Made by a program: the position numbers and the translations under genes
DNA from: Klebsormidium nitens
Lineage: Eukaryota > Plantae > Klebsormidiophyceae
DNA length: 64,000 nucleotides
NCBI GenBank assembly: GCA_000708835.1
Contig: DF237032.1
Span: forward strand, 124,001-188,000
Direction of reading: 5' to 3'
Notes under the pieces: generated by a model
Databases searched by the model: none
What the model was told of the DNA's origin: nothing
The model's input: the letters and a program-made list of their open reading frames with translations, nothing else
Part shown: positions 28,837-39,800 of the stretch, piece after piece
Position numbering within the stretch: position 1 is the stretch's first letter
How the letters are laid out: every line of letters starts with the position of its first letter

Positions 28837-31800
28837 TCACTTCCGCTTGTATCGTTTCTTGCTTTTGAACGCTTTCCGCGGCTTCATATGCTCTTTCTTC
28901 TTCAGGCCGCCCGCCGGAGAGGGCCCGCCTGACCCCGCTCCCGACTCCTGGCCCCCTTCCTGCCCCTCCGGCCTAACCTTCTTCTTAACCTTCTTCCCTT
29001 TCACCCCTTTCATGGCTGCTACCTTTCGCGGGTCAAGCAAACCCGCCTCCTTCAGCTTCATGATCGACTTCGCGCCCTTCGCCTTCCGATACCCCACGTC
29101 GACCATCGACGTTTTTGGCGTATCGTCGTCTTGTTTCGATCTTTTCCGTTTCGGCTCGTCGACTTGACCGTCCATCTCCGCCTGGTCGTTTGCGATCTGC
29201 CGCTCCGCTTCCAACCGCCGCCGTTTCTTTCTGCATGATCCAAGTTCTTATTTCAGGCACCTCTCAAAACTGGGTTCTGCTCGAGATGTCTTACAGACCA
29301 CATAATGCAGACCTAAGTCTGCTTTTAGACCACTTTGCGGTCTAACCCACTCTTGATACGCCAACATACTACAGGAATCAGAGGGCAAAGGTGGCCAAAT
29401 ACCGAGGATCGGACATAGTGGCCCGTTCGCAAGCGCTATCTAAGGCGGAAGGAAGAAAGCAACGAAATACCACGGTCTCTCAGCACTGTCGCGACAACGA
29501 CGAGGAAACTGTTCGACATCGACGAAGAAACTGTTGTCTCAAAACAACGCTAGATAGCAAGACGAACGTCTTTTCCTTCTCGATTTCAGAACCACCGTAA
29601 CTCCAAAAGCCAGAAGAGCAACAGAAAATCACGGGTCTTACCTAGGCAGCCGCTTCTCCTTCTCCGCCTTCTTCTTCTCAAGCGCCCGCCGGTCCTTGGC
29701 GCTGAGCGCACTCTCGACCTGCTTTTCCCCACCTGCCCCGCCCTCCGCCGCCTTCTTCGCCGTTTCCGCCGCTTGTTTCCGGTCCTTGGGCGATTGAAAC
29801 CACGTCTTCGGTGGGCGCGAGTAGATCTCCGCCTCGTGCTCCACCATGTTGGACGCCTGGAGAGGCAAGCAACGCATAAGTTCGATTTATTTCTATCCGT
29901 GCTCCGCACCTAAAAGGACCCTCATCCCCAAGCCGACCCCACCCGTCCCAAGCTGACCTGATTATCCATAGACCTTATCATTCGTAAAATCGAGAGTTAT
30001 CAGGAACGTACCATCAGGTGACAATCATCGCTTCGTGCAGCGCGTTGAAGAGAACCGCAAGGGTGAAGTGCAGACCCTAGGGAGTCAGGGTATGTTGATT
30101 CTCAGGAATACACCATTGAGATCCGTGTTCAAGAACCCTGAGGATCTTTGAAAAATCCATTCCATTAACCATCTCGTAAGTTGCACAGATCAACCTGATG
30201 CATGACCTGCCAAAATCCTGACCCCCATTTTTCAACTTCGCTGACCATAACCCTCATCCAGCTGTTAACCCGAAATCAACACGCCTGCCTTCATTTGACA
30301 ACCTAACTTAGTGATCCTAACCCACCTTGTTAACCTCCATCTCGGCCTTCCTCAGCGCGCGCTCCTCCTGCTCCTCTTGCATCACCTCCCGAATGTCCTC
30401 TTCCAGCCGCTCAATCTGGTCGCGACACTTGGCAACAGCTGCTGCTGCCACCTGGCGGCTCCGCAGCGAGCGGCCCGCCTGCTTGACCACCGCCTTGAGC
30501 AGCGCACGGTCTTTCTCCGTGGCAAAAGTCACGGCGCATCCGTTTTGTCCCGCACGCGCGGTTCGCCCTACTCGGTGCACATACTTGGTTATATCCTGTA
30601 TGAAGAAAAAGAGAGTTCCGTTAAGACGGCTATGGTGGATCCAAACCCGGAGCGAAATGATGGGGCGCCCATTTTGGGAATTCGCCCCGTATTCGATACG
30701 TTTTGGGCAGAAAAAGGATTCCGGACGCACAGATTAGAAAAGACACTCACTTTCGCGACCCTCTTTGTGATCCATTGAGGCTTTGTGATTCCGGAATCCA
30801 GATCCAGGTCATGGGCTTCTTCACTTGCCCGTAAAACAACCAACAGGGCTCGTTCTTGATTTGTCGCAACCCACCAAAAGGTACGCAATGACCTCTCTTC
30901 TAAGTTTTAACATCAGGGGCCAGCGTCGACCGCAAAGAGAAGGACCTCGGGATTTGTACATCATGCCGACGTTACACTGCGCAATCCTTCGAAAGCTCTG
31001 ACCTCTCTTCTGCAGACAAAATAAGGGGTTAGCACTGATTGCTAAGAGGTGAATCTCGGGATTTCACATCATGCCGACGTTACACTGCTGCAATCCCTGG
31101 AAAGCACCGAAACCGAGTAGCAACCCGCCGGTTAATGCAAAACCTAACCCGTTGACACCCTGGTCTGCTCACCTTGGGGCAGTCGAAGTTGACAACTGTC
31201 TCCACGCCCATAATGTCCAGCCCGCGTGCGGCCACGTCAGTGCAGATGAGGTAATCGGCTTCCTGCTGACGAAAAGTCTCGAGCGCCTGTAGCCGCATCG
31301 CCTGGGTCAGGTTCCCATGGAGCTCCGCCGCGCGCAGGCCCGCCAAGCCAAACAGGATCTTCAGCCTGCGCAGCGAATTGCAGACGACGCTGTTAGTGGA
31401 GCTTCTACTTTCAGCGAACTTCCTTGCCAAAAGCTGCACTTCGTCCCCGAAACCGCGAGTTACCGAAGAGAAGCAGAGGAGTTAAGAAGGCGTATGTTTC
31501 AAGTGAAGGTGTCTCGATTAAAGCAGCTCGCCGAGCAAAGCGGAGCCCACAAGAATTACGAAGCCTAGCTTGTGGACTGTAAAAGACTGGCACTTTTCCT
31601 ATGAACCCGTTTTGGTCTACAGAACAACGTTTCCGAGCCATAGATTGCCCCGTCCCAACTGAAGAAGCGGCCGTAGAGGAGATAAAAGGCGACAGACAAG
31701 AGGACGGATGTATCGAAGCTTGCCACGAGGAATCCTTGAGTGATCCGTGTACGCGATCATTGCAGAACAGAAGACCATCCGGGAGATTGACGGACCGACG

Positions 31801-34800
31801 GACGCACTGCTATGGCTTGTTTGGCTTCGACTTAGACATACCATCATGTTTGGTTATCAGACCCACGCGATTCAGGAGACTGCCAGATGTAAAAAGACTG
31901 TGAAACGCTGCTGGGGCAACGACAGAAGCAGTACTCCTTTCTCCAGTCCCGGAGACTCAATTGTGGACGTAAGGACTGTTAAACTCCACAATCTGGTTCT
32001 AATGCGAACCCAACACGAGACGAGACAGTACGAAAAGTGAGTCAATTTAAACAAGCCGCTTTGCACAACTATCGACATAACAAGAAAAGCCTCAGACAGC
32101 GGTTGCCCGCGGGTTGTGCAGCACTACATACGGGTTGCTATAGCCCGAGGGTTCTCCCTGGTGATCCAGGGTTCGGGCCAACACCCAGCTGGCGCTTTCA
32201 AGGTCTGCATCATTGGCCATTCTTTGAAAATTCTTCGGTTAGCGGCCAGAATACTACCATCGACAAGCTGACGTAGTGCAAAAGGAGATTGTTGCTCGCG
32301 ATTTCGATGTTTGGGTGAACGTCTCAAGTCATATGTGCGCAACCTCTGCAAACTAAAAAGCCGACATAAGGAGAAGATGTCATTGCAGATCAGCGCGGGT
32401 GAACGGTAAGTGGCACTCTGCAGAGCCTGCACGAAAAGGCAACCGACGAACAAGATGGAAGACGCAGCAAGAGGACCAAAAAGCCCAGGACAAGTGTCGA
32501 AAGATAATAAGACTACTTCCGCCGGGTGCTCACCTATGCGCCTCTGACTTCGTTGCGCTAAAGATTATCGTTTTGCTGCGGAAGTTGCGTGTGCACAGCG
32601 CCAGCAGAAGTGCTTCCTTGTCGGCTTCCTGGCTGGGTTTCAGCTTAACCACCTCCTCTACCAGCGTCCCCGGGCGCCGTGTTTTCGGGTCAGCTGATAA
32701 CCGAACCGGGTTACGCAGCGACATGGTGATCAGCTGGTTAACCTCGTCGGTCATCGTGGCACTGCAAGGGAAGAGGGAACAGAATGAGCCGCAGCGCCAT
32801 TCCTGATATAATGGTGCAATTCCTCGAAGCTCACTGACGAAATGCTTTTCTTGCGTGATGAGCTCGGTCAACATGAACAGGACCTAGCAATACACTCTGT
32901 AGTATCCAAAAAGTATGGCAGATCTCGTTTCCCAAGGACGAGGGAAACTGTTCCAAAAGATATTACCAGACTACCAAAGAATTGAAGGCGCTGTTTCATC
33001 TTCCAGAAATCTACCAAGCAACTGTCAACCGCAGTGTCTTTATCGAGAGTCAGACCTCCCCCCCCATAGTGCACAATTTGAACTCGTCCCTCGTCCTACC
33101 CCTTGTTTGAGCATTCTGATACCAGATCCGTGAGCTTCGCCTACCTTACAGCTCTGTACTCTCAAGGTCGTGCCAATCACTGTCCTTGACCTTTTCGGAC
33201 AGCTTTGTAAACGAAGACAGCGGCTGCCCTCCCGACAGGATCTTTTTTCATGCTTCCCTTGATCTAATGAGCAGCATCCGCTCCTGTTTCAACGACTTTC
33301 TTCCTGATCACTACCAAGAAAGAGAACACCTGACTTCCGAAGACAAGCCCTGTTCAAAAGACGGCAGCCCCAGAGTCCCCTTCGAAAGTTTCGAACAGAC
33401 TAGTTGACCTCTCTTTTCAATTTCAATCATTCTACACTTGAAAGAACAAAAAAGTATAATCTTAAGGAGCATCTGCCGTCAATAATTATTTCTGCGTCAG
33501 TCTTTCTCAGAGGCTATGATTTCCACTCTAATCACAAGAGAAGAAACACCCTGCACTTCGAGTAATCAGTAGCGTCCGCTTCTACAGACAGGCAAGAATT
33601 TTCTTGACTTGATACAGGCATTCGCCTTTCCCATCTAGGCCTTTTGTGCGGTCCCCGTTCTACCCATGATAAAGAACTTGCCTTTTGCCTCTTTTTGAAC
33701 AATTAGCAGAATGTTCGGCATGCCCTTCGCCAAAAGCGCAGCGTCTGCCTTTCCTCAGTACAATTTCGGACGGTCTTTATGAACAGCCCTCACCTGAGAG
33801 CAGCGTCTGCCTCTTCCCCAGAAGATTCCGAACACTCTATATAAAATATCCCTCACCTGAAAAACCGCCTTTGCCTCTACTTCGAAAAATTCCAAACGTG
33901 ACCAGAAATCGGCACCCTCTTCCTAGAAGAAGGACTTTCGCAAAACCCCTCACCTGAAGAGCAGCGTCTGCCTCTTCTTCGGACAGTTCCGGACAATCTC
34001 CTTGACCTCGTCCACAAAGCCCATCTCCAGCAGACGGTCCGCCTCGTCCAGCACCAGGATCGCCAAATCCTCCAGCCCCACCGACTGTGTGTTGCGCACG
34101 TGATCGATGATGCGCCCGGGGGTTGCGACCACGACGTCGGGGTGCAGGCGCAGCGCCGTTTCTTGCACCTGAGCGCAGGATCAATATGGAATCTTAGTAG
34201 GTGGAAGCGTGTGACATACAAAAATAAAGAATGCACACCACTTAAATTGACCTGGGAAAGGAGACCATGAGGTCTGAAGTCTGAATCACGCGCCGTTCTG
34301 GCACAACTAAGGACAGGGTTGGTAAATCGCGCAGGACATGAAGCTGATCCTCCTGGATTACAAGGCAGCTATGCAACTTCGGAGCATGCGAGCAAAAACC
34401 GTGTTTGCAACTGGAGAACAGGCGACACGCCCTGGCCCACAAATGTGAACAATTTGAAGACTTCAAGGCTCGGAAGAGTGTTTTGTGGACTTCAGAGACG
34501 AAGCAGAAGGGAGACTCGAAGCATGATCCAGTAAATGGCTGTCTCCTCGATCCTGGTGCAGATACATAAACAAGAAGCCAATGACAATTCTGATTACAAT
34601 CAAACCCTGAATGGACAGAACCCAGAAGTGACCTTTGTGGTCGCTGATCGCCTGACTGAAAACGCTATCAGTCGCTTTGGCTGCCTTTCAAGCCTAGTCT
34701 TCAACGATGTCAACAATGCGATATATGAAAAAGGCCTCAGACAGCGGTTGCCCGCGGGTTGTGCGGCACTACATACGGGTTGCTATAGCCCGAGGGTTCT

Positions 34801-36270
34801 CCCTGGTGATCCAGGGTTCGGGCCAACACCCAGCTAGCGCTTTCAAGGTCTGCATCATTGGCTTTCATAGATCACCACCAGATTACTTCCGCGCACATTC
34901 GCAACTTTTTGAGCATCAAACAACCACCACATTGTCAGAATGAGGGGACACGAGTAGAAGAGGCGACACTTACAATGCAGGTCGCTTTTCTGCAAAAACA
35001 TAGTTTCCAAGATGGAAGAACAAACTTAAGCTCCGCAACCACCACCAGCCATCGACAATAAACTCATCTTAAATGTCACCAACACAATTTATTGGTGTCA
35101 AACTTTCACAACAAACAATCCACTATCTGACAATCCCCCCGCCCAGCAATCATGCTTGGAGAGCCCACGTCTGATTGAACAAGAGTCTTTTCAACCTGCT
35201 CTCAATATCCCAACTTGTACCACCACCCATCAAGCAGAAAGCCACATCAAAGTACAAGAAGATGACTAGAAACTCCCCTCTAAATCCCTCAAACCTAAAC
35301 CCTAAAACAGAAACCCTAATTGCTTGACACACATTGTAGACGCACAGGGACCCACCTTGTTTGACAATCCTCCCACCACCAGGCACGCCCTGATGTCCGT
35401 AAACTGCGCCAGCTTCTCAATCATCGAATGCACCTGAACTGCCAGCTCGCGCGTCGGCGTAAGAACCAGTACCCTGGTCGCGGGCACCCGGCGGGGGCGG
35501 TATAGTAACCTTTCTAAAATGGGCAGTGCGAACGCGGCCGTCTTGCCAGAGCCAGTGATTGCACTCCCGCAAATGTCGCGGCCAGTTAGTGCGAGGGGCA
35601 CACACGCTGACTGGATCGGCGTGGGCTTTTCGTAGCCCAGGGCTTGACAGGCTTTGAGCAACGGGCGGGAGATGTTGAGCTCGCCAAAAGAGCGCGCTGT
35701 GAAAGAGGCGCCCTCAGAGGATGAGAAGAAAGTACCCTTCGATGATGGCCCGCCCTCATTCGTCTCTGCTCTGCCATTCTTCCTTCTGACCTGTTTGTCT
35801 GGAAGAGCCGGCTTGCTACTCGTTGCCTCCGCATGAGACCGCGCGCGCGCCTTCTGCTCCCACTTCTCCTCCAGCTCATCGTTCTCGTCACTTGAATCCT
35901 CATCATCGCTGCTCTCCGCCTGCTCACTACCACCGCCTACACCATCATTACCATTCCCTTGTAAACCATTACCATTTGCCTCCAAAATCTCAGCCTCTTC
36001 CTCCTCTTCCTCTTCATCGCTCTCCTCCTCAATCTGGTCCTCTTCCTCTGACTCTTCCTTTGCCCCACCACCCGAATCCTTGAAACCACTTCCCCTCACA
36101 ATTGTCCTCCTCCGCAATTGCTCCCGGATCTTGTGATCGATGGACGTCGTCCTGTGCTGTGAATGCTCCTCATCCACCAGCTTGGCAGCATTGCCAAAGT
36201 CCCAAGGAGACTGCGCGGGGCGGGCTGGTGGTGCGTCATCGCCCAGGTCAAACACGAAAGAGGGATCCAT
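28837..36270 (-). CDS. DDX27: DEAD-box RNA helicase DDX27/DRS1/RH28-like (60S biogenesis), 7 exons
   Basis: Acidic N-terminus; Q motif GYEKPTPIQ; AITGSGKT, PTRELA, VATPGR, LVLDEADRLL, SAT, LHGNLTQAMR, TDVAARGLD, YVHRVGRTAR; EMEVNK-ASNM...RPPKTWFQ; basic end KAFKSKKRYKRK*. Confidence 0.95.
32089..32217 (-). ncRNA. Candidate intronic box C/D snoRNA-like RNA, copy A (DDX27 intron 3)
   Basis: Sense to host. Terminal stem gcc/ggc, box C-like ATGATGC (32213-32207), box D CTGA (32095-32092), internal hairpins. 127/129 identical to copy B, with unrelated flanks. Confidence 0.65.
34734..34862 (-). ncRNA. Candidate intronic box C/D snoRNA-like RNA, copy B (DDX27 intron 1)
   Basis: Same C/D boxes, terminal stem and hairpins as copy A; two substitutions. 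Confidence 0.65.
35291..35318. promoter_or_regulatory. Two telo-box motifs (AAACCCTA) plus a degenerate copy in DDX27 intron 1
   Basis: aaaccta-aacccta-aaacag-aaacccta; perfect AAACCCTA at 35297-35304 and 35311-35318. Confidence 0.5.
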
Positions 36271-36848: not shown

Positions 36849-39800
36849 ATGCTGCAATCAAGCGGGCAGGGCGACGGCCCCAGTACGAGTGGCAGCGAGC
36901 AGGCCTCTTCCTACGTGGGCCAGATAGTGGTACGGCATTGCTCATTTTTATTCTATAAAGTCCATCCCTGCTGTCGCCAGCCGAAACGGACACGGAGGGC
37001 AGGTTTGCAGGATACCACCCGACCCATCGCAGAAGATAAGGCAGCATGGGCAAAATAGAACCCCCCGCATGTGGCCCTTCCGTCAAATGTTTTGAGACTT
37101 GACGCTTTCCTGGTTTCTGCTATTGCACCGTAGTGTTTGGTTGGTTTCTCCGCTTATTGGCATGAAGCCATAGGGCATCAATCTGGTCATTCGCTCTCAC
37201 ATTAGGAAGGGGCCTTTCATTCTCACCCATCAACGTCGCAACTTTTAAAGCAATCCCCTGTGCCAAGCTGATCACAATCACCAGTGTCTGGTCATCAAGG
37301 GGGCTCTGGAAGTTGTGCACTTTAGAATACAGCATACGCTGCGCCGTCACTTACTTGCACGTCTTAAGAAACTGCCAATCTGGATCGACGCTTCAGTTTC
37401 TCATCTGGGTCAGCTTCTCATAGAAGGTTGCTGGGTCCGCTTGACTATCCTGAACGAGGAGCTACAGGCGCTAACTGTTTGGTGCCTGTGTGCAGGCTCC
37501 AGGGGACATTGTTCTGGATCTGACGCAGGCAGGCAAACTGGTCAGGATTGGGGGGGGCTTGCAACAGGTCGGTAGCAGCATTCTTTTCATGGCTTTCTGC
37601 TAGCTTCATCTTGCGATGGTTTGAGTGGGCTTTCTTCTCAACAATCTCTCCCAGCTTTTTTGGGCATCAGCTTTGGAGTGTTGTTCTTTCCGGGAAATCC
37701 TGTCCAGCTTCTTCTATGTATTGACCTCAGGTTGCAAAGCTAGTGAGTTGGGAGTTCACCTGCCCCTGTTAGTCAAATGGCTACCTGTCTCTAGGCATCA
37801 CTTTTAGCAAAGTGGGCCGTGTTGAAGTACAGAAGGATAGGTTTCTGCAGTGCAAACCCGTGCCATGAAAGGAGCTTCGGGGCGGACTTTCGCAGAAAGT
37901 GGATGCTCTTATTCTGGCAGTCAGGTCTGCCAGTCTGTTTTGCCAAGCATCTAGCTTGCAAATTCCTGTGAAGCACTTGATGAATGTACAGAGTTCAGGG
38001 CGTAGCCGGCAGAACACTGGTTGTGCTCGTGTGCAGGACGGCACGTCCCTAGTTGTCACGAAAGCTGGGCGGCTGAGGCATACCAAGCCAAGCAAGTACT
38101 GGGTGGAAGGCAGCCAAAGACGGGTATGCCCCTCCCTCCGGTTGTCACCCTACACTGTCCTGTTTGGAGGCTGACCCCTTGTAGTTTTCGCTCTCCCCTC
38201 TCATTACGATGCCAATAACCCGGTTTTTGAACTGCCGGCGATGTGACTTGCAACCAAAACCAATAGATTCGAATATGGAATTAAGGTTTTCTCCGCCTTC
38301 TGTCCAGTACGTACCGGCAGTGGAGGATGTTGTCGTGGGCGTTGTGGTGGAGCGCTATGCCGAGGTAGGCACGTCACCTGCGCCCTTCTGTCTCTGTTGT
38401 CGTTTTCTGCCGCCTGACTCTTGTTGCCCACTTTAGGCCTTTCTCGTTTCTCGGGGTTTCTTAGAGAGAAGGTTTTACTTTCAGGAGAGAACATAAAGCA
38501 CTTGTTTCTCGTGAGGAGCAGGTGAAACGAAGATCGGCTTGAGTTTCGTAATGAACCAGAGCTTCGTTGTTTTCAACAAGACCAAAGACCGTTCCAGTCG
38601 ACTTCAAAATGCGTAACACGCATGCTGTGAGTCTTGGTTCCACAAGACGCTCCCCGCCCTCCCTTGCGCAGCACTTGGTCATCGACATTGGCGGTCCCGT
38701 GACCGCGCTGCTGCCGGCATTGGCGTTTGAGGGTGCCACTCGACGAAACAAGCCGAACTTGAACGTAAGCTTTGGGTAATCTCGCCACTTATAATCCTTT
38801 CAGCAGCTTCCTCGACTTTGTGCTACCACATGACGCGAAGTCTCTGATTCGTTTCATACATCAAAGAAAAGTGTCCTCGTTTATTGTGTGTCGGCCTCCC
38901 TGAAGGCGAAGCGAACTGCCACCTGATGGGTGGTGCTAGTAGGATCAGGAGAGCTACTAAGAAGTTTCCATCAGGCTTTGCTAAACGAAGTTCACGAGTT
39001 CGGAAGGGCAGCCCTAATCGACTCGCAATCTGATCTAGAATCTAAGCAAACGAGCTGGTATCGTAAGTTACATTGAACCCCTCGAACTACTTATCAGAAG
39101 GCCTGTTCTTTCACCCGAGGGTAAGTTGCACTGCCTGATTGTGTTCCCGTCTGCTCACTTTTCTCCGATTGCATGGCTGCTTCTCATCACGGACGCTTTA
39201 CCCGCTCGTTCTCTTATGCTCTTTTTTGCACCCGTCTGCTCACTCGTCTGCGCCTCAAGAAAACAACCCCTTGGATCCCAGGAGCCCCACTTTCTCCCCA
39301 CGATTATTGTAGATCGATCGGCCACTGCTGACCGACTCCTTTCATCCCTTCGTTGCAACAGATTGGCGACTCTGTCTACGCCCGGGTTACAAGTACCAGC
39401 CGAGACACAGAACCGACGCTGGCGTGTCATGACGCCAGCGGTCGGGCCGCAGGCTTTGGACCCCTCGCAAAAGGTTACCTCTTCCAGTGTAGCACGGGCC
39501 TGGCACGGACGTAAGACTGCGAATGGCTTTTCTTCCTATTCATGGTCAAACTGCTCCTGGACTTTGATTTTGAGTGTTGTTGTGCTTGTTGTGCTTCTTG
39601 TGCTTACAGCGAAAAGTGCTGAGCTCAAGGGAGATTTCTGTCACTCTGCGTGGGTAAGGTCACACCCCCTTGCGGAACGCCCTCTTACCATACCTTACAA
39701 ACGTATCTGTCAAATGCGCCTTTTCTCTTCTGCTCGTTGATAAAGCATTATCTACGTTCGGCAAATAAAACAAACCGTCGACGTTCAAGGTTGTAAGAGT

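Follow-up and report, generated by a model that had tools for sequence, protein, structure and literature searches.

The 64,000-nt stretch of Klebsormidium nitens DNA analysed here (the window) raises the question of what kind of RNA is encoded by a 129-nt unit that occurs twice within one gene, DDX27, and what that RNA may act on. Copy A (34734–34862, minus strand) lies in DDX27 intron 1, its ancestral position, with an ortholog in the same intron of the related-alga loci L001, L002, L003 and L006. Copy B (32089–32217, minus strand) lies in intron 3. The intron-3 copy is absent from L001, L003 and L006, so that copy B is, as judged from these relatives, a recent duplicate of the intron-1 unit. 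A sequence-only reading had described the copies as 127/129 identical, with similarity ending at a terminal stem. Both descriptions hold: the copies differ only at RNA positions 27 and 98, and no relationship is seen between their flanks (11/60 and 15/60 positions identical). As that reading also stated, both copies read GCC-A-AUGAUGC...CUGA-GGC on the host (minus) strand, and the flanks lengthen the terminal stem in each copy, as seen in the sequence and in the predicted fold. BLAST and a covariance model both failed to reveal a third copy in the 64-kb window, and copies A and B are the sole long repeat within window 25–42 kb.

The host gene was delimited by protein similarity and by splice joints in RNA contigs, all of its exons lying on the minus strand. 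The coding part of DDX27/Drs1/RH28 exon 1 (35356–36270) and exon 2 with the DEAD motif (33954–34168) rest on both kinds of evidence, each exon matching DDX27/RH28/Drs1 proteins when searched separately. Exon 3 (32534–32761) and exon 4 (31173–31365) were placed by splice joints, exon 5 (30325–30595) by homology and splice joints, and exons 6 and 7 (about 29642–29856 and 28837–29233) by homology. Introns 1–4 are skipped exactly in contigs of four presumed RNA runs; since these contigs join the exons across introns 1–4, both units lie within introns, in the sense orientation of DDX27. The DDX27 introns themselves appear in the same RNA contigs as low-depth fragments (depth 3–9), a contig type that cannot reveal a small RNA.

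Other features of the host locus and its surroundings were recorded in passing. Intron 4, which is retained in a contig of one RNA run at depth 9, contains a 108-nt tandem duplication with an exact 23-nt copy (window 30909–31088, minus strand); one copy of this duplication resembles a small unit, ~52 nt long, running from a box C to a box D, and the duplication has no match in L001/L006. Intron 2 (window 33735–33999) and L001:12660-13230 hold degenerate copies of the neighbouring exon end or start with its splice site, and these exon-like intron copies are pseudo-exon fragments that arose via local duplication, in K. nitens and in relatives. In L001, the gene for the exosome subunit RRP40 stands head to head with DDX27 (L001:5993-6316). 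An ORF at window 38209–38436 (minus strand; region 38209–38500) resembles, by eye, part of L001 RRP40.

Each copy of the unit is bounded by the two boxes of a C/D RNA, both on the minus strand. Box C, AUGAUGC with a deviant last base (copy A 34852–34858; copy B 32207–32213), contains a UGAUGC that is invariant in every homolog covering it, while the preceding 5′ base varies (AUGAUGC/GUGAUGC-type). Box D, CUGA (copy A 34737–34740; copy B 32092–32095), is invariant in homologs. Together they show kink-turn geometry, comprising a 3-bp stem, a 3-nt bulge, tandem GA, U-U and G-C, with a stem of 3–4 bp in all homologs. No D′/C′ pair with K-turn/K-loop geometry was found by inspection, and no strong D′ guide. 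D′/C′ boxes are often degenerate (PMC3116282), so that the missing pair does not remove box C/D membership. The terminal boxes and stem, the spliced host intron and the above-neutral conservation described below are those of a box C/D snoRNA, bearing out the earlier call of an intronic box C/D snoRNA; we consider it nearly certain that this is a real gene of that kind. The Rfam check proposed with that call returned no family at gathering, and raising E to 10 added nothing meaningful, for either the window copy or the L001 unit, and snoR121, U49 and SNORD5 as sequence families gave no match over the same range. That the sequence-only reading found no match to U3, U8, U13, U14 or U22 was likewise borne out by the lack of any Rfam match at E 10 and of conserved antisense to their 18S/5.8S/28S sites, with no U13- or U14-type 18S complementarity above chance. 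The homology of plant snoRNAs fades between land plants and algae (PMC5122169). The RNA is most likely a new member of the established box C/D class, forming a snoRNA family without annotation in a streptophyte alga.

Conservation was assessed at the DDX27 loci of related algae (L001, L006, L003-5 and L002). The unit is found in DDX27 intron 1 of these relatives at 85–90% identity, and the surrounding intron does not align. Between K. nitens and L001, the RNA is identical at 110/130 positions (85%), as against 65/149 four-fold degenerate exon sites (44%; p 6e-13). Because of this difference between RNA and four-fold sites, the unit is, on the comparative evidence, under selection. Neither Closterium DDX27 nor the more distant DDX27-like loci yielded a homolog with the covariance model. 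Metagenome contigs contained no exact pattern match to the RNA, and a metagenome scan with DDX27 exon 1 gave no additional close relatives. The relatives' DDX27 introns, which had been suggested as a source of covariation, yielded orthologs; the two effective lineages show no double compensatory change. Five positions vary in the inner, 3′ and terminal stems, and all are one-sided changes, mostly C/U opposite G. The Logan contigs of some relatives stop inside the unit (L002:2016-2064, L003:1-102), pointing to either mixed strains or another nearly identical copy in the samples concerned.

The search for a target drew on rDNA from eukaryotic contaminant contigs in bacterial assemblies, with more than 110 assemblies (L007-L120) carrying plant, yeast or fungal rDNA. 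Plain scans were negative: seven segments were run against angiosperm rRNA as contiguous duplexes and with RNAduplex, and none exceeded the controls, the site in question being missed because of two mismatches in angiosperm rRNA. A D-anchored scan of all rDNA loci produced a 25S candidate that matches seven ascomycete 25S sequences perfectly over 9 bp, and sequence context places its target C at Arabidopsis 25S C1518. The D guide comprises 11 nt (RNA 112–122; copy A 34741–34751, copy B 32096–32106, minus strand), in which the D+5 base is a G (34745 in copy A). Cytidines were ranked, on condition that D+5 forms a Watson-Crick pair, in the rRNAs of two angiosperms, yeast and an ascomycete. With the 20 nt before box D, the target C ranks 1st of 1285 and 1296 (angiosperms), 1038 (yeast) and 616 (ascomycete), although this 20-nt window was picked after the site was known and the plant rank at 12 and 15 nt is 5th and 4th. 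The 20-nt pairing amounts to 16/20 in both angiosperms and 17/20 in both yeast and the ascomycete. With the 11-nt guide alone, the target C ranks 3rd and 2nd in the angiosperms and 1st in yeast and in the ascomycete. In 2000 trials with shuffled guides, the yeast score was reached 3 times, and the top sites of plant and yeast were homologous, at such scores, 9 times.

The quality of the duplex depends on the two bases that follow the target C, which are AC in angiosperms, AG in yeast and GG in the matched fungi. The 11-nt guide forms 9/11 pairs at the angiosperm site, with mismatches at D+6 and D+7, and 9/11 at the yeast site, with a mismatch at D+7; ten contiguous pairs occur only with the ascomycete variant. 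Validated Arabidopsis guides require at least 9 consecutive pairs, a length reached with the ascomycete variant and not with angiosperm or yeast rRNA. At least 9 consecutive pairs would form in K. nitens only if GG follows the target C in its 25S, and since the angiosperm site has two mismatches beside the target, the guide assignment predicts GG at this place in K. nitens 25S. In the relatives, an A-to-G change in the guide and a C-to-U change in the extra-pairing element retain G·U pairs, and one extra base present in these relatives must bulge. This extra-pairing element (RNA 103–108; copy A 34755–34760, copy B 32110–32115, minus strand) is complementary to rRNA 10–15 nt downstream of the target C, and many guides of plants and yeast have extra pairing next to their primary duplex (PMC8053127, PMC3116282). 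A further 7 nt (RNA 93–99) match the angiosperm form of the same target site perfectly, possibly by chance. Arabidopsis 25S C1518 carries a measured methylation (MethScore 0.93) assigned to U49 and snoR121 (PMC8053127); snoR121 reaches the 25S site through box D, and the site is equivalent to human Cm2409 (PMC2685112). In Arabidopsis rRNA, methylation affects only 21 of about 1300 cytidines. On these sequence grounds, the RNA is probably a guide for the equivalent of Arabidopsis 25S Cm1518/human Cm2409.

The guide must be accessible for such pairing, and here two folds compete. The nested stems and the hairpin with a GCAA loop noted in the sequence-only reading are both present in the predicted fold; however, the GNRA hairpin is specific to K. 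nitens and is not kept in relatives. Two partners are available to the central GCGG: pairing with the downstream one locks the guide, and pairing with the upstream one leaves it free. In K. nitens, the locked fold is predicted to be favoured by 3.5–5.4 kcal/mol, whereas the predictions for L001/L006, in which the tetraloop is lost and the loop is 5 nt, favour the open fold by 3.9–4.7 kcal/mol. Thus a pre-D sequence tied up in a hairpin is not the conserved fold, as L001/L006 favour the upstream hairpin. In the open fold, 11 nt are single-stranded ahead of box D, and the extra-pairing element forms the loop of the upstream hairpin. Folding z-scores of the units are modest (−1.1 to −2.4). It was also observed that RNA 44–50/64–70 and 97–100, 108–111 and 116–119 (window 34744–34819) contain two motifs, each present twice around one partner; the doubling yields two pairs of mutually exclusive helices, of which the 3′ pair decides guide accessibility.

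The inner hairpin (RNA 29–95; copy A 34768–34834, copy B 32123–32189, minus strand), recognised from fold and conservation, has an invariant 7-nt bulge. Within RNA 28–100, blocks of 27 and 18 nt are nearly or fully identical in homologs, and this ~70-nt hairpin is conserved more strongly than one guide requires. No convincing second rRNA site emerged when a hypothetical D′ was placed at every RNA position, and an H/ACA-type pocket in the hairpin had no rRNA target above shuffles (best 14 vs 15–28). The hairpin may have a structural role, as in U49 and other long guides, or it may have a second function. One form of the latter would be a bifunctional RNA that combines methylation of the Cm1518 equivalent with chaperoning of pre-60S domain III by the hairpin and a ~20-nt helix-invading pairing. 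In this extension, which seems to us rather unlikely, the hairpin would act with its invariant bulge and two switchable helix pairs, and the RNA would be co-expressed with DDX27, a helicase of that same particle. Among other candidates considered, a 7-mer present more than once, with complementarity to 18S about 374–380 and to tRNA T-loops, was set aside as chance, being partly in a stem with no adjoining box, and resemblances to U22, U6atac and U1-guiding scaRNA pockets found no support from any tool. Antisense of the RNA to the host pre-mRNA was limited to 10–11-nt matches at different places in two species.

Three other accounts of the locus were weighed against a Cm1518-type guide. A non-functional duplicated fragment or a MITE/SINE within introns would explain two near-identical copies with sharp ends, and no discrete transcript appears in poly(A)-type contigs, which are unable to show a small RNA. 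However, the unit occupies the same intron on the same strand in relatives, at 85% identity where neutral sites are near saturation, its similarity stops at the terminal stem, and the 64 kb contain no more copies. The SINE/MITE signs that had been named as refuting a snoRNA are thus missing from the window, which has two copies on one strand, at an orthologous position, with no target-site duplication in the flanks of A or B. Orthologous conservation largely refutes such an element, and we regard it as extremely improbable. A guide for an snRNA, a tRNA or a lineage-specific rRNA or spacer, possibly a composite with an H/ACA-like hairpin, would accommodate the long hairpin followed by an ACA 14 nt from the internal loop, and long, intron-encoded RNAs are frequent among plant snRNA guides (snoR127, 138 nt; snoR130, 120 nt). 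The RNA sequence contains no H box, CAB box or GU repeat, as would be sought in a scaRNA or composite, and the pocket lacks an rRNA target beyond shuffles; we give this account a slender chance.

The sequence-only reading had preferred an orphan RNA of processing or chaperone type. Such an RNA, similar in mode to U22, U14 or snR190, would bind core C/D proteins and act through its inner hairpin or by keeping pre-rRNA unfolded, and the Cm1518 match would be a relic or chance. The length of 129 nt, the near-invariant inner blocks, the deviant box C, the lack of a canonical D′/C′ pair and of a second rRNA target, the guide occluded in the lowest-energy K. nitens fold and the ribosome-biogenesis host all agree with this. 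However, the D+5 register falls on a measured methylation site with the top rank in four rRNAs, Rfam yields no match to U3, U8, U13, U14, U22 or snR190 at E 10, and U13-/U14-type 18S complementarity is not above chance. With a pre-D hairpin that is not conserved and a D+5 rule that gives the Cm1518/Cm2409 equivalent, the orphan designation is weak, and we consider it unlikely.

For the preferred reading, a methylation guide, a pathway can be outlined from the observed gene structure, conservation, motif geometry and best-ranked complementarity. Splicing of the DDX27 pre-mRNA followed by trimming would release the intron-encoded box C/D snoRNA as a discrete RNA. Boxes C and D would then form the kink-turn that is bound by Snu13/L7Ae, leading to recruitment of NOP56, NOP58 and fibrillarin, a kink-turn protein recruitment that is established for the box C/D class. 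The 11 nt before box D would pair with large-subunit rRNA, in a duplex whose exact form in K. nitens is presumed, and about 6 more nt would pair just downstream as extra pairing. Finally, fibrillarin would 2′-O-methylate the cytidine equivalent to Arabidopsis 25S C1518/human 28S C2409. The predicted guide is one overlooked by standard homology search, and 'orphan' calls in the K. nitens genome can stem from tests on angiosperm rRNA, which differs at the target. Only the inner hairpin could raise the RNA above a routine guide.

Comparison with known RNAs helps to place it. U22/SNORD22 is an intronic C/D RNA required in 18S processing, and the K. nitens RNA presumably resembles it in length, the long inner stem, the small pre-D hairpin and the AG-rich inner segment. 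However, Rfam shows no similarity to U22 at E 10, conservation does not extend to the pre-D hairpin, and the K. nitens RNA has a candidate methylation target whereas U22 has none. U22 has also been reported with U5 snRNP proteins (bioRxiv 10.64898/2026.04.02.716167). Plant U49, about 250 nt long, guides 25S Cm1518 and Cm2880 (PMC8053127, PMC7464842). Both it and the K. nitens RNA are long C/D RNAs that share extra pairing and the Cm1518 target (predicted here); in contrast to U49, the K. nitens RNA is half as long, with no second guide found (no D′/C′, no strong second rRNA site). Vertebrate mgh28S-2409, which directs 28S Cm2409 and which we take to be SNORD5, lies in an intron of a housekeeping host and is about 70 nt long and unstructured. 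Its target is homologous, according to PMC2685112, to the one predicted here; the K. nitens RNA gives no Rfam match. Arabidopsis snoR121 is an 85-nt box C/D RNA that guides 25S Cm1510/1518 via box D (PMC2685112). It has the predicted target nucleotide, the use of box D and the class in common with the K. nitens RNA, which differs in being 44 nt longer, in lying in a DDX27 intron rather than being intergenic, in its long inner hairpin and in having no Rfam family match, so that the likeness lies in the predicted function. These parallels suggest that a methylation common to Arabidopsis (Cm1518) and human (Cm2409) is guided in an early-branching streptophyte lineage too.
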